A DNA stretch of 64,000 bases, from the NCBI RefSeq assembly GCF_947568905.1, contig NC_079168.1:46810001-46874000 (forward strand). The letters run 5' to 3'. Both the position numbers and the translations under genes were made by a program. Below the pieces are notes generated by a model that saw nothing but the letters and a program-made list of their open reading frames with translations, was not told the DNA's origin and ran no database searches. Positions 7,677 to 40,486 of this stretch are shown in pieces; positions within the stretch are counted from its first letter, which is position 1, and each line of letters opens with the position of its first letter. The stretch is from Ostrea edulis (Eukaryota).

Positions 7677-7799
7677 ATGGAACCCCTGTAACAGAAAGGC
7701 AAACATGTGATAACAGTTACTATAAATGTTGTCCTGATGGAGTGACATTTGCCAGAGGACCAAACTATGAAGGGTGCCAGCAATCAGAATCTGGAGCAG
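7677..7799 (+). CDS. PAPLN: Papilin exon: lagrin-type Cys repeat
   Basis: ttttcag|...|gtacac, phase 1-1; [41 protein letters not shown]. Confidence 0.85.
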
Positions 7800-39200: not shown

Positions 39201-40486
39201 AATGTTGCTGCATGTACGTGTCTGGAGATCGATGCATAAATTGTGATTATTTATATCATTTCATAGCGGTTAGATGTTTTAATGACTCGAGAGAAAAAAA
39301 ACTCATGAAGTAAATATCCACATATGTATACATGCATACGGAAGGGGAAATAAACTTTTTTTGGTTTCATCTCGGCTACCAAACATCAGAAATTTAATCA
39401 AACAACTCATGTGTTTGGTACTAGGGCATTTACTTGCAACATTCTGAAAAATAACCTTCAAACCAAGCAGATATTTTTGCATCAGGAATGAGTCGTCTTT
39501 AGCCATCACTAATTTTTATACAAGAGTTGCCCAAGTGACTCATAATTTTCGTAACTTCTTTTTCTGAAGAGTTTCAAAAATTTTCCAGTTGCCATATCCC
39601 ATATTCTTTCACAAATATGGATTTCAAGGTTATTATGGATGGAATACCTCAAGGTATTAAATGGATGTGATAGAAACTTTTGTGTTTCACAATTTGCAGT
39701 TATAACTACATGAAAATTTGCTTTTTAGAATCTTTAAGGGCTAGAATTGATCCTGTAGAGGAGAGGAAGAGAGAGAGTGAAGCACTCTACCTTACCTGCT
39801 CAGGGTTCGGTTACCCAACCCCCTCAATTTCGTGGGAGAAGAATGGCTTGTCACTGACATCAGATCAGAGGATCAAAATCCAAGGGGGTAGCTTAAGGGT
39901 CATTAATCTTGCCCTGGAGGATACTGGTACTTACAACTGTATAGTGAGGAATGATGAGGAGAAAGTGGAGGACACTGTGTCAATTCAAGTCGTTCCATTC
40001 GGTAATTAGAATTTATATTTATAGAAATTCTGAGAGTGTTGATAAGGCCTTAAAGGATCCTCGTGGAAGTCTGTTGTGAGAGGTGCAGTGCTACATACCG
40101 AGGAGAGGCTTGATGTTCTTGCTTTGTGTTTTGGGACATTTTTTGTTTAAGAAATTATGACAAGAATGATACTCTTGCTTAATCTTCCAAAAATGTATAA
40201 ACTTGCTCTATATGATTTTGGTGAAAATAGATTAACAGAAAGATATGAAATAACAAATTTAATTATTAGTTATGATCTATGGAAGATATGCAAGCACTGA
40301 AGTTGAGGATCCTCCGATTTCATTGCAGATTTGGTGCCATCCGATTGTAAGGACACAGGCAGTAGGTTCAAATGTTCTCTGATTGTTAGTGCTCGACTGT
40401 GTGGTCACACCCGGTACTCAACACCCTGCTGCGAGAGCTGCCGTAGGGAGAGAGAGAGACTTATGCAAAAGTCGCCGAGGGGATAA
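7677..40486 (+). CDS. PAPLN: Papilin-like ECM proteoglycan/protease-inhibitor gene, 3' portion (5' exons lie upstream of the window or were not found)
   Basis: 30 GT-AG exons join in one frame to TAA at 40484-40486: 7677-7799, 9798-9980, 10759-11007, 11933-12103, 13203-13297, 13812-14013, 14104-14201, 16029-16074, 16229-16357, 17355-17555, 17955-18146, 19907-20095, 22709-22882, 24178-24405, 24874-25041, 25704-25871, 26982-27104, 27313-27435, 28766-28888, 32216-32332, 32559-32669, 33061-33255, 33374-33754, 33917-34105, 34222-34332, 34578-34710, 34932-35086, 37653-37925, 39729-40001, 40329-40486. CCPDG repeats + Kunitz array + Ig + C-terminal PLAC is the papilin signature. Confidence 0.9.
9530..9730 (+). 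mobile_element. Degenerate tRNA-derived SINE
   Basis: Decayed B-box (gagtttgagtcc) and the ..gcataggtctaaa..gtgatgtctcaatat..aaatattctc tail shared with 22124-22425. Confidence 0.5.
9798..9980 (+). CDS. PAPLN: Papilin exon: Kunitz 1
   Basis: [55 protein letters not shown]; tandem acceptor tagcag (alternative start 9795). Confidence 0.9.
10759..11007 (+). CDS. PAPLN: Papilin exon: Kunitz 2 with Thr/Pro-rich linkers
   Basis: [52 protein letters not shown]; tacag|...|gttagc. Confidence 0.92.
11933..12103 (+). CDS. PAPLN: Papilin exon: Kunitz 3
   Basis: [53 protein letters not shown]; catag|...|gtactg. Confidence 0.92.
13203..14013 (+). CDS. PAPLN: Papilin exons: fibronectin type III domain 1 (13203-13297, 13812-14013)
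   Basis: [26 protein letters not shown]|[32 protein letters not shown]; FN3 Trp and Tyr hallmarks; phases compatible. Confidence 0.82.
14104..16357 (+). CDS. PAPLN: Papilin exons: three lagrin-type repeats (14104-14201, 16029-16074, 16229-16357)
   Basis: [25 protein letters not shown]; CK|[16 protein letters not shown]|PNFEGC; [24 protein letters not shown]. Confidence 0.87.
17355..17555 (+). CDS. PAPLN: Papilin exon: Kunitz 4
   Basis: [52 protein letters not shown]. Confidence 0.92.
17955..18146 (+). CDS. PAPLN: Papilin exon: Kunitz 5
   Basis: [50 protein letters not shown]; attcag|...|gtatga. Confidence 0.9.
19907..20095 (+). CDS. PAPLN: Papilin exon: Kunitz 6
   Basis: [52 protein letters not shown]. 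Confidence 0.9.
20385..21990 (+). mobile_element. Helentron-like non-autonomous element interrupted by a hAT-like insertion
   Basis: 5' hairpin tataccccccgcaaacgaagtttggggggg, tccgt microsatellite, 3' end gcgggggtattagtcccattaggacagttctagtt. Confidence 0.6.
21042..21941. mobile_element. Non-autonomous TIR transposon (hAT-like) with a 6-bp target-site duplication
   Basis: TIRs CAGGGCTCGAAATTA / TAATTTCGACCCCTG; tcttat on both sides (21036-21041, 21942-21947); no transposase ORF. Confidence 0.75.
22124..22425 (+). mobile_element. 5'-truncated tRNA-derived SINE (resembles bivalve Meta/Deu-domain SINEs, from recall)
   Basis: B-box GGTTCGAATCC at 22140; central taaagaaccctcactgctcaa..gcataggcctaaattt; (caat)n tail; imperfect direct repeat ctaatgctgga / ctaacactgga. 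Confidence 0.75.
22709..22882 (+). CDS. PAPLN: Papilin exon: Kunitz 7
   Basis: [52 protein letters not shown]. Confidence 0.92.
23165..23563. repeat. 33-bp minisatellite, about 12 copies
   Basis: Unit ttgtgatkaacacgtgcyagtctcttatcgtga, head to tail, no spacers. Confidence 0.95.
24178..24405 (+). CDS. PAPLN: Papilin exon: Kunitz 8 with an EGSGE linker (absent from the ORF track)
   Basis: ttcctag|[76 protein letters not shown]|gtaagt. Confidence 0.9.
24562..24809. mobile_element. TA-flanked MITE
   Basis: Imperfect TIRs tactgtagatgtatttatttt / aaaattagatatgtctacagta. Confidence 0.6.
24874..25041 (+). CDS. PAPLN: Papilin exon: Kunitz 9
   Basis: [52 protein letters not shown]. Confidence 0.92.
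25704..25871 (+). CDS. PAPLN: Papilin exon: Kunitz 10
   Basis: [52 protein letters not shown]. Confidence 0.92.
25955..26700 (+). mobile_element. Degenerate Helentron-like element containing a 44-bp minisatellite (about 26213-26552, ~7 copies)
   Basis: 5' tttttatatgcccatcttttgatgg..tgatggtat; unit catacatgtacatattgtgtccggatcataatgggaaggtgtgt; related decayed units at about 27745-28320. Confidence 0.65.
26982..27104 (+). CDS. PAPLN: Papilin exon: LDL-receptor class A repeat 1
   Basis: [41 protein letters not shown]; six Cys and the DxxDxSDE acidic motif; 123 nt, phase 1-1. Confidence 0.87.
27313..27435 (+). CDS. PAPLN: Papilin exon: LDLa repeat 2
   Basis: [41 protein letters not shown]; 123 nt. 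Confidence 0.87.
28766..28888 (+). CDS. PAPLN: Papilin exon: LDLa repeat 3
   Basis: [41 protein letters not shown]; 123 nt. Confidence 0.87.
28936..29430 (+). mobile_element. Partial Cg170-like Helentron non-autonomous element
   Basis: 5' ttttagttcacctaagctgaaagctca..tctgatcac, followed by about two cagattcaagttt..ggggtaggatgggg monomers. Confidence 0.7.
30186..31785 (+). mobile_element. Helentron-like non-autonomous element carrying a Cg170-like ~167-bp satellite array (7-8 monomers)
   Basis: ttcttctcaagaacca recurs about every 166-168 bp; 5' gtctgt microsatellite; 3' gtgactcaggtgtgcgatgtggcctatgggcctcgttt; resembles oyster Cg170/HINE structure. Confidence 0.82.
32216..32332 (+). CDS. PAPLN: Papilin exon: LDLa repeat 4
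   Basis: [39 protein letters not shown]. Confidence 0.87.
32559..33255 (+). CDS. PAPLN: Papilin exons: fibronectin type III domain 2 (32559-32669, 33061-33255)
   Basis: [33 protein letters not shown]|[37 protein letters not shown]. Confidence 0.88.
33374..33754 (+). CDS. PAPLN: Papilin exon: Kunitz 11 followed by (TERPRV)x7
   Basis: [52 protein letters not shown], then 18-bp coding repeats. Confidence 0.9.
33589..33714 (+). repeat. Coding 18-bp tandem repeat x7 (TERPRV)
   Basis: acagaacgacccagrgtc x7 inside papilin exon 33374-33754. Confidence 0.95.
33917..34332 (+). CDS. PAPLN: Papilin exons: Kunitz 12 (33917-34105) and a lagrin-type repeat (34222-34332)
   Basis: [52 protein letters not shown]; [24 protein letters not shown]. 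Confidence 0.9.
34578..35086 (+). CDS. PAPLN: Papilin exons: Ig domain 1 (34578-34710, 34932-35086)
   Basis: IKITC..VSWYKDG|[34 protein letters not shown]. Confidence 0.88.
37653..37925 (+). CDS. PAPLN: Papilin exon: Ig (I-set) domain 2
   Basis: [46 protein letters not shown]. Confidence 0.92.
39729..40001 (+). CDS. PAPLN: Papilin exon: Ig (I-set) domain 3
   Basis: [43 protein letters not shown]. Confidence 0.92.
40329..40486 (+). CDS. PAPLN: Papilin last coding exon: PLAC domain and stop codon
   Basis: cattgcag|[52 protein letters not shown]; six-Cys PLAC pattern. Confidence 0.9.

Follow-up and report, generated by a model that had tools for sequence, protein, structure and literature searches.

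A papilin-type matrix gene of the oyster Ostrea edulis with FN3 and LDLa modules in its Kunitz array

Papilin, conserved in basement membranes, regulates ADAMTS proteases and collagen IV, and nearly all work on it, to our knowledge, has dealt with flies, worms and mammals. Which gene occupies positions 7677-40486 of the window (the whole 64,000-nucleotide stretch of Ostrea edulis DNA analysed here), and whether the FN3 and LDLa modules in its Kunitz array belong to a papilin, are the questions raised by this locus. The forward strand between these positions holds the C-terminal 30 coding exons (about 1690 codons) of a papilin-type matrix gene of the oyster, in which exon-by-exon Pfam scans identified 12 Kunitz, four LDLa, two split FN3, three Ig and one PLAC domains, arranged in the order lagrin-K3-FN3-lagrin x3-K7-LDLa x4-FN3-K-(TERPRV)7-K-lagrin-Ig3-PLAC (Table 1). 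The domain order and module counts of the initial annotation were reproduced exactly, with TRF used for the TERPRV repeats and papilin homology for the lagrin repeats, and its limits are correct, 7677 being a phase-1 acceptor and 40484-40486 the stop codon. The single spliced frame that it had proposed was likewise recovered, as 30 of 30 exons can be chained in one continuous frame with phase-1 introns predominating and canonical GT/AG sites at 29 of 29 junctions, eight of which were seen directly in spliced contigs. Nearly all modules correspond to a symmetric phase-1 exon or exon pair; symmetric phase-1 exons are the classic substrate of exon shuffling and tandem exon duplication.

Table 1. 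Coding features of the papilin-type gene in the window
Feature	Position	Strand	Support
Lagrin (CCPDG) repeat exon, first in window	7677..7799	+	phase 1-1; tblastn collinearity with oyster papilin models
Kunitz K1	9798-9980	+	PF00014; splice sites; phase 1-1
Kunitz K2	10759-11007	+	PF00014; splice sites; phase 1-1
Kunitz K3	11933-12103	+	PF00014; splice sites; phase 1-1
FN3-1, two exons	13203-13297 (phase 1 to 0), 13812-14013 (phase 0 to 1)	+	PF00041 on both halves
Three lagrin repeat exons	14104-14201, 16029-16074, 16229-16357	+	splice sites; collinearity with oyster models
Kunitz K4, K5	17355-17555, 17955-18146	+	Pfam; splice sites; collinear with orthologues; phase 1-1
Kunitz K6, K7	19907-20095, 22709-22882	+	Pfam; splice sites; collinear with orthologues; phase 1-1
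Kunitz K8, K9, K10	24178-24405, 24874-25041, 25704-25871	+	Pfam; splice sites; collinear with orthologues; phase 1-1
LDLa L1, L2, L3	26982-27104, 27313-27435, 28766-28888	+	PF00057; 123 nt each
LDLa L4, divergent type	32216..32332	+	Pfam; in contigs joined to LDLa-type end upstream and FN3-2 downstream
FN3-2, two exons	32559-32669, 33061-33255 (both phase 1-1)	+	Pfam; contig joints
Kunitz K11 and (TERPRV)x7 linker	33374..33754	+	Pfam; TRF; joint 33754/33917 in contigs
Kunitz K12	33917-34105	+	Pfam; joint 34105/34222 in contigs
Lagrin exon after K12	34222-34332	+	joint 34105/34222 in contigs
Ig1, two exons	34578-34710, 34932-35086	+	V-set E 2e-6; joints 34710/34932, 35086/37653
Ig2	37653-37925	+	I-set E 5e-16; joint 35086/37653
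Ig3	39729-40001	+	I-set E 5e-14
PLAC and stop codon (40484-40486)	40329..40486	+	PF08686 E 2.7e-9

Canonical papilins (Drosophila Ppn, C. elegans MIG-6, vertebrate PAPLN; ADAMTS-like) comprise a cassette, lagrin repeats, Kunitz domains, Ig domains and a C-terminal PLAC, and carry no protease domain (bioRxiv 10.1101/2025.02.10.637428). About 100 papilins from arthropods, nematodes, annelids and brachiopods conform to this layout in their Pfam content. All 12 in-window Kunitz exons match PF00014 (E 4e-15 to 3e-22), with P1 residues R in four, L, T and E in two each, N in one and A in one, and a further (13th) Kunitz exon, K0, precedes the window by 4.5 kb. The five CCPDG-type lagrin repeats of the window, for which there is no Pfam model, show homology to lagrin sequence of named papilins, and the three Ig domains are followed by PLAC at 40329-40483. 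The papilin cassette (TSP1, Cys-rich region with spacer, more TSP1) was located 56-81 kb ahead of the window on the forward strand, and together with a single lagrin exon of 1837 codons it extends 47-81 kb upstream; its TSP1 exons have Pfam matches, and the ADAMTS spacer was placed within C5:46747776-46750193 by collinearity with P0271 residues 189-303. The large lagrin exon shows 38-53% identity to named arthropod, annelid and nematode papilins (E down to 1e-274). As for a metalloprotease/disintegrin region, no reprolysin or disintegrin family was detected by Pfam on full-length P0271 or by the exon scans. In tblastn, the proteins of Saccostrea (P0151), M. gigas (P0152, K1PKN2) and C. virginica (P0271) and a Logan contig protein (P0272) are collinear on the cassette, the lagrin exon, K0 and every window exon, with 50-89% identity. 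Homology and collinearity thus identify the oyster locus as orthologous to proteins that carry the name papilin or papilin-like, as initially annotated.

The modules foreign to canonical papilins are well defined. The four LDLa exons all match PF00057 above the gathering score (E 5e-8 to 4e-11), and L1-L4 each exhibit six cysteines, the FxC aromatic before Cys2 and an intact predicted Ca2+ cage (CD..DC.D.SDE). L1-L3 are tandem duplicates (nucleotide identity 93% for L1-L2 and 82% for L1-L3), with the similarity confined to the exon and about 40 nt of flank, and L4 has its nearest paralogue in a multi-LDLa gene on C1 (64% identity). The Pfam searches of this genome took one exon at a time, and the FN3 halves were therefore scored separately: PF00041 matches three of the four half-domain exons, namely both halves of FN3-1 (E 6.5e-5 at profile positions 3-37 and 7.8e-3 at 42-79) and the second half of FN3-2 (E 9e-9, positions 28-81), while the first half of FN3-2 (32559-32669), scanned alone, gave no match. 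The orthologous whole FN3 domains in P0151, P0271 and P0272 form two stretches of 76-89 bits. FN3-1 has orthologues in the FN3-1 of other oysters and in mussels; FN3-1 and FN3-2 are no duplicates of one another, their BLAST similarity being slight or absent (<=17 bits). The nearest paralogue of the second FN3-2 exon (FN3-2b) is a multi-FN3 gene on C8 (48% identity), and the paralogue search with the FN3-2b and L4 exons found no donor gene carrying LDLa beside FN3. Among the best 150 protein matches to the FN3-2b exon, ranked by whole-protein score, multi-FN3 proteins dominate; five few-stretch proteins among the matches listed were unrelated FN3 proteins, some bacterial.

Splicing was observed in two RNA-like runs, X1 and X2, which derive from a close relative about 3% divergent and not from the sequenced animal, and whose presumed RNA nature is supported by the spliced joints and by the contrast between exon depth (100-690) and the depth of most intron bins (0-7). 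Their contigs contain eight GT..AG junctions over an LDLa-type end, L4, FN3-2, K11, K12, lagrin, Ig1 and Ig2, so that splicing in this relative is observed from an LDLa-type exon (loose end only) through L4 to Ig2. The joints 32332/32559, 32669/33061 and 33255/33374, which connect L4 with FN3-2a, FN3-2b and K11, were seen in both X1 and X2, bearing out the earlier expectation that splicing joins the FN3 and LDLa exons to Kunitz exons; K11/K12, K12/lagrin, Ig1a/Ig1b and Ig1b/Ig2 were further contig joints, all GT..AG. One contig, X2 record 7 (942 nt), carries L4, FN2a, FN2b and K11 behind 228 nt of upstream sequence with an LDLa-type end, an overhang equal to about 1.85 LDLa exons of which the last 30 nt were read and are LDLa-type. 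None of the eight joints is present in the DNA run X3, which spans the stretch contiguously. The junctions K0 through K10, K10/L1, L1/L2, L2/L3 and Ig2/Ig3/PLAC are based on splice-site logic and orthologous models. In addition, the Logan contig protein P0272, which has 39 member sequences, is full-length, with 1710 aa on a 6142-nt contig, and the contig represents a spliced mRNA, because 6142 nt covers exons that span more than 44 kb in this genome.

The same layout is present in the predicted proteins of four other oysters, and the locus therefore represents a lineage-specific variant and not a discovery. The architecture is already public in Magallana gigas K1PKN2 ('Papilin', 2751 aa), the Saccostrea cucullata papilin-like model (2988 aa), two isoforms of Crassostrea virginica LOC111130469 (X3 and X4, 3388 and 3471 aa) and the Logan contig protein. 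The string common to these oysters is K-lagrin-K3-FN3-lagrin3-K7-LDLa(n)-FN3-K2-lagrin-Ig3-PLAC, with a large lagrin block upstream in the other oyster models, joined in M. gigas and C. virginica by the ADAMTS spacer and TSP1. Differences were observed in the LDLa count, which is four exons here, two in C. virginica and the Logan contig, and three in Saccostrea and M. gigas; in the lagrin exon, with 1837 codons here versus about 840-1240 aligned residues in the other oyster models; and in the TERPRV linker (an 18-nt unit x 7.2 at 33588-33716 by TRF), which aligns only gapped to the proteins of Saccostrea, M. gigas and the Logan contig, whereas C. virginica gave no collinear tblastn match over K11-K12.

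Outside oysters, PF00041 and PF00057 occur in none of the roughly 100 arthropod, nematode, annelid and brachiopod papilins, many of which carry WAP instead, and this agrees with the initial statement that FN3 and LDLa are not known from canonical papilins; with gastropods and other groups included, the exception is an LDLa array in Haliotis. A further departure of the oyster form from the canonical one is that lagrin repeats are scattered among its Kunitz domains. The papilins of other bivalves (Mytilus, Pecten, Mizuhopecten, Ylistrum, Mya) resemble the oyster in holding FN3 inside the inhibitor array, but each has one FN3 type, no LDLa, and WAP domains, and that of Mya exhibits its own FN3-WAP alternation. 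The mussel FN3 is nearest to oyster FN3-1 (52-60 bits versus 19-25 for FN3-2), and the scallop FN3 is nearest to FN3-2 (51-60 bits versus 17-24 for FN3-1). The Haliotis asinina papilin-like isoform X6 (P0306) contains 10 LDLa stretches by Pfam and 19 by a local HMM, placed between its first Kunitz domain and the lagrin/Kunitz region (residues about 613-1461) and without FN3, whereas the oyster block lies between Kunitz 10 and FN3-2; the Haliotis array looks like an independent acquisition.

The initially proposed lineage-specific exon shuffling is supported in part. Among about 200 papilin-type proteins surveyed, FN3 is confined to bivalves and LDLa to oysters and the separate Haliotis array, a distribution which fits lineage-specific shuffling of phase 1-1 modules. 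The two FN3 modules nevertheless predate oysters, since the FN3-1 type also occurs in mussels and the FN3-2 type in scallops, and the LDLa block alone is oyster-specific. Outside papilins, LDLa stands directly beside Kunitz in the extracellular protein HAI-1/SPINT1 (Kunitz-LDLa-Kunitz), where the LDLa module modulates inhibitor access, and FN3 adjoins a C-terminal Kunitz in collagen VI alpha3 and collagen VII. These share modules with oyster papilin and no wider homology, HAI-1 being small and membrane-bound, with MANSC and TM segments, and the collagens having triple-helical regions.

The window very probably contains the last 30 coding exons of an ostreid papilin locus, encoding a segment of one secreted ECM polypeptide, be it in a giant form, a short form or both. 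A giant form of more than 4000 aa would bear the cassette through splicing of the lagrin exon to K0, and a short form of about 1750 aa would run from a signal peptide and K0 to PLAC. Both appear feasible because K0 bears its own ATG-ATG (C5:46805453) and a hydrophobic predicted signal peptide directly before the first Kunitz Cys, as well as a pyrimidine-rich, phase-1 internal acceptor exactly at the signal-peptide end (L008 5547; C5:46805547). The same K0 start opens the full-length P0272 and recurs as a conserved ORF in at least three further clusters of oyster origin (64-69% identity), and the 42-kb gap between the lagrin exon and K0 holds another same-strand signal-peptide ORF. With the K0 exon as query, no RNA fragment across the lagrin-exon/K0 junction was found and only genomic-type ORFs were returned. 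The K0 start with its signal peptide and conservation, the gap with its ORF and the lack of a crossing fragment favour two adjacent genes, an upstream cassette and lagrin gene and a separate secreted Kunitz/FN3/LDLa/Ig/PLAC gene formed by K0 and the window, in which case the long models of RefSeq and GLEAN for other oysters, computational models on which the long cassette-bearing form rests, would be computational fusions. Such a division is nevertheless on the unlikely side, as the lagrin exon ends in a strong phase-1 donor (L004 3122; C5:46763122) that is phase-compatible with the K0 internal acceptor, and three independent annotations, including oyster RefSeq models, join both halves, which together make precisely a canonical papilin and of which neither is complete alone; mussel, Mya and Haliotis models moreover hold the cassette and PLAC in one protein.

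It is somewhat less probable still that some extra modules, L1 and L2 above all, are unused or alternatively spliced, giving a protein with two or three LDLa as in the other oysters. The counts in orthologues, the high identity of L1 and L2 and the reach of the contig evidence, which covered a stretch downstream of L1-L3, would fit such a loss, but each of L1-L3 retains an open frame, six Cys and the acidic cage and is flanked by good phase-1 splice sites, and the mRNA of the relative has at least part of two more exons' worth of sequence before L4. That all four LDLa exons of this genome enter one mRNA is a prediction. That unrelated genes or pseudogene debris lie side by side by chance or misassembly is refuted for practical purposes, since every exon is open and phase-compatible and follows the order of four orthologous proteins and of a spliced contig, and X3 runs over the stretch without differences. 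More tentative, and possible without being favoured, is a two-unit locus in which an internal promoter at K0 yields a stand-alone secreted Kunitz/FN3/LDLa/Ig/PLAC protein of about 1750 aa, with an LDLa block expanding by tandem exon duplication (two, three and four copies across oyster genera) and stepwise recruitment of the FN3 types in the pteriomorph ancestor and of LDLa in oysters; if true, the locus would supply a multi-specific, protease-trapping matrix protein that evolves fast and possibly serves in shell or mantle epithelium.

By analogy with other papilins, the product of the ostreid papilin locus would act as a basement-membrane or pericellular scaffold presenting many Kunitz inhibitor heads of mixed specificity, with Ca2+-loaded LDLa modules that would engage basic patches on ligands or proteases, and with FN3 and Ig modules that would serve as spacers. 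Of the earlier proposal that Ca2+-dependent LDLa binding is coupled to protease inhibition, the cage residues stand, intact in four of four LDLa; we infer the inhibitor activity and ligand binding, as well as the joining to the cassette and the tissue. A role in shell or basement membrane is speculation. The shell proteome of Perna viridis (PMC6641155) includes a true papilin (Kunitz, Ig, PLAC), and 'Papilin' transcripts of C. gigas changed with larval shell delay (PMC5824581), neither being linked to this gene. Oyster papilin offers a defined candidate for shell-matrix and mantle proteomics. No new mechanism is opened, the architecture being readable from public protein records. The inhibitor array of bivalve papilins accepts foreign ECM modules (FN3 and LDLa, with WAP in other lineages) via phase-1 exon shuffling, and the module copy number, still varying between oyster genera, provides a tidy natural example of modular ECM evolution.

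Stop-free segments on the plus strand between 7677 and 40486 of the window (G000:C5:46810001-46874000, in a genome of 895 Mb and 52 contigs) were all listed, the candidate exons were scanned one by one against Pfam, and the 100 kb upstream of the window was also examined, with the features collected in the table. The exon-by-exon scan returned exactly the domain order given in the initial annotation, which had described a papilin with two FN3 and four LDLa modules inserted into its Kunitz array. The array had also been claimed to form a single spliced frame, and a splice-site and phase search agreed, as canonical GT/AG sites were observed at all 29 junctions. 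Without exception, the Kunitz, LDLa, lagrin, Ig2, Ig3 and PLAC-preceding exons are in phase 1-1. FN3-1, FN3-2 and Ig1 are each internally split, yet as whole modules they are also phase 1-1. The coding length within the window is ~5078 nt (~1690 codons).

Features of the papilin locus (C5, contig coordinates; plain numbers, window positions; K, Kunitz exons; L, LDLa exons)
Feature	Position	Strand	Evidence or remark
First TSP1 exon	~C5:46729220-46729471	+	
Cys-rich, spacer and TSP1 exons	upstream of window	+	
Lagrin exon, single, uninterrupted, 1837 codons	C5:46757749-46763259 (open), donor 46763122	+	
365-aa ORF	C5:46772642-46773736	+	
K0, 13th Kunitz exon	C5:46805453-46805723, 4.5 kb before window	+	Pfam, E 1e-17
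K0 internal acceptor	C5:46805547	+	phase 1, pyrimidine-rich
Repeat family	1-120		
Lagrin repeats	7677-7799, 14104-14201, 16029-16357 (two repeats), 34222-34332	+	CCPDG type, without Pfam model
Kunitz, 12 exons		+	PF00014, E 4e-15 to 3e-22
FN3-1, 2 exons		+	PF00041, each half matched by its own exon
LDLa, 4 exons		+	PF00057, above gathering score
FN3-2, 2 exons		+	second exon PF00041, E 9e-9; first exon alone, no Pfam match
Minisatellite, K7-K8 intron	23164-23563		33 bp x 12
Minisatellite, K10-L1 intron	26246-26552		44 bp x 7
Tandem array, L3-L4 intron	30425-31668		166 bp x 7.5
TERPRV linker	33588-33716	+	18-nt x 7.2 repeat
Ig x3, then C-terminal PLAC		+	Pfam

Sequencing runs were utilized to assess the splicing, where 15–18% of sampled words were present in two RNA-like runs (X1 and X2; organism A, one study) and 62–95% in several DNA-like runs (organism B). 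X1, X2 and one DNA run (X3) were placed on 31700-37690 (~6 kb), an interval picked so as to leave out the 1.2-kb array of tandem repeats between L3 and L4. After cut shifts, the X1/X2 contigs displayed GT..AG joints (exon end/next exon start) at 32332/32559, 32669/33061, 33255/33374, 33754/33917, 34105/34222, 34710/34932 and 35086/37653, and a loose end at 34332 continues into the start of Ig1a. Record 7 of X2 (942 nt) holds 228 nt upstream of L4, the last 30 nt of which encode an LDLa C-terminus (…DISDEDAGEC), and then runs through L4, FN3-2a and FN3-2b into K11. The depth of X1/X2 was 100–690 in exons against 0–7 in most intron bins, and these spliced joints and the depth contrast suggest that both runs are RNA; X3 was contiguous and unspliced over the same interval. 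The X1/X2 contigs diverge from the window by ~1–5% in exons and therefore derive from a close relative, not from the assembled animal. For the block of LDLa4, FN3-2, Kunitz, lagrin and Ig, and in this near relative, the joints directly contradict the case that would have refuted the initial annotation, namely FN3/LDLa exons not spliced to their flanking Kunitz exons.

The lagrin-exon query yielded 392 proteins, and among the best 120 of these, almost all named papilin, PF00057 and PF00041 were listed only for the two oyster entries, P0151 (Saccostrea cucullata papilin-like) and P0152 (Magallana gigas K1PKN2, 'Papilin'). The Kunitz-to-PLAC part of P0151 as query added isoforms X3 and X4 of Crassostrea virginica LOC111130469 (P0271, P0273) and P0272, a 1710-aa protein (39 members) on a 6142-nt Logan contig; all of these proteins have Kunitz, LDLa, fn3 and PLAC. 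In the P0272 contig, the two FN3 modules and a pair of LDLa are set among Kunitz domains, and since the same exons occupy >44 kb here against 6.1 kb there, it must represent a spliced mRNA. In tblastn against 164 kb of genomic sequence, the oyster papilin proteins aligned collinearly at 50–89% identity, covering the N-terminal cassette (TSP1, Cys-rich, spacer), the lagrin exon and K0, with four proteins jointly spanning every window exon from the lagrin at 7677 to Ig3. With these four proteins, no HSP passed the filter for the PLAC exon, which was assigned from its Pfam match and the PLAC at the C-termini of these same proteins.

Differential distributions of the two modules were observed among papilins, using local HMMs from oyster protein segments, Pfam scans and pairwise BLAST of FN3 segments. 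Oysters display the order K-g-KKK-F-ggg-K7-L(2 or 3)-F-KK-g-III-P (g, lagrin; F, FN3; I, Ig; P, PLAC); mussels have one FN3, nearest oyster FN3-1; scallops have one, nearest FN3-2; and Mya has its own FN3-WAP alternation. No FN3 or LDLa was listed for Mercenaria, Potamilus, four gastropods, two cephalopods, Lingula, Capitella, Priapulus or about 100 arthropod and nematode papilins, and Haliotis asinina has at least 10 LDLa, elsewhere in the protein than the oyster block. This distribution makes FN3 in papilin a bivalve trait older than oysters, and the LDLa block that separates K10 from FN3-2 is, from the sequences compared, oyster-specific among the sampled taxa. C. virginica has two LDLa copies, as does the Logan contig; Saccostrea and M. 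gigas have three, and this genome has four, of which L1-L3 are tandem duplicates (93% and 82% nucleotide identity) whose likeness does not reach beyond the exon itself and ~40 nt of flanking sequence. The inserted modules could not be traced to one donor locus among this genome's paralogues. The architecture is a lineage-specific form within a family already known, and databases already contain it. The layout is explicit in protein records such as K1PKN2, and no description of FN3 or LDLa in a mollusc papilin was found in the literature searched.

In Mya arenaria P0289 (LOC128207366), FN3-WAP-FN3-WAP lies at residues ~2040–2290, near the end of the Kunitz array, with near-identical FN3 copies that are unrelated to oyster FN3-1 or FN3-2. 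The Haliotis asinina papilin-like isoform X6 (P0306) carries 10–19 tandem LDLa at residues ~613–1461, between the first Kunitz and the lagrin/Kunitz region, which looks like an independent gain.

Upstream of the window, 42 kb separate the lagrin exon from K0, which starts on ATG-ATG, its hydrophobic signal peptide lying directly ahead of its first Kunitz cysteine. P0272 opens with the same start, which is kept in short ORFs of other oysters (64–69% identity). These findings speak for an independent short form that extends from the signal peptide/K0 to PLAC and whose existence in this oyster is rather likely. The lagrin exon ends in a strong phase-1 donor, the internal acceptor of K0 falls precisely where the signal-peptide coding region ends, and three other oysters have RefSeq and GLEAN models that use the join of the two exons; a long form with the cassette is judged moderately probable here. 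A fragment search with the K0 exon as query returned genomic-type ORFs only, with no RNA across the lagrin exon/K0 junction, and it is conceivable, if rather doubtful, that the cassette/lagrin unit and the K0-to-PLAC unit are never joined. The presence in K0 of both its own start and an internal acceptor implies either that an alternative promoter exists or that the locus is made of two units.

HAI-1/SPINT1 and collagens VI alpha3 and VII offer precedents for LDLa or FN3 next to Kunitz domains. Among the 12 in-window Kunitz heads, the P1 residue is R in K3, K6, K7 and K9, L in K8 and K10, and T, E, N or A in the rest, a variety which suggests several protease specificities as well as some heads that do not inhibit. 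The six cysteines and acidic Ca2+ cage are intact in all four LDLa modules, making Ca2+-dependent docking of basic ligands plausible. By homology, the oyster protein would be a secreted pericellular or basement-membrane member of the ADAMTS-like family, to which papilins belong (bioRxiv 10.1101/2025.02.10.637428). For a possible shell-matrix role the support is only indirect; the Perna viridis shell proteome lists a true papilin (PMC6641155), and C. gigas 'Papilin' transcripts tracked larval shell delay (PMC5824581).

About 50 lagrin repeats of the CCPDG type, each ~36 aa, make up almost the whole of the 1837-codon exon, which is longer than the aligned lagrin blocks of other oyster papilin models; long near-identical blocks inside it point to recent tandem expansion. 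The 365-aa ORF in the lagrin exon-K0 gap, whose N-terminus resembles a signal peptide and whose Ser/Thr-rich body is mucin-like, had no match in Pfam and may be a nested gene. Minisatellites were observed in the K7-K8 and K10-L1 introns, and the L3-L4 intron is largely filled by its tandem array, the element of which is probably a common interspersed repeat; a copy of a related element lies at C1:52044958-52045297 on another contig, and the nearest paralogue of L4 (64%), an LDLa exon, follows about 3 kb downstream of it. The bulk of 41 genome matches found (90–92% identity) fell on the first ~120 bases of the window.
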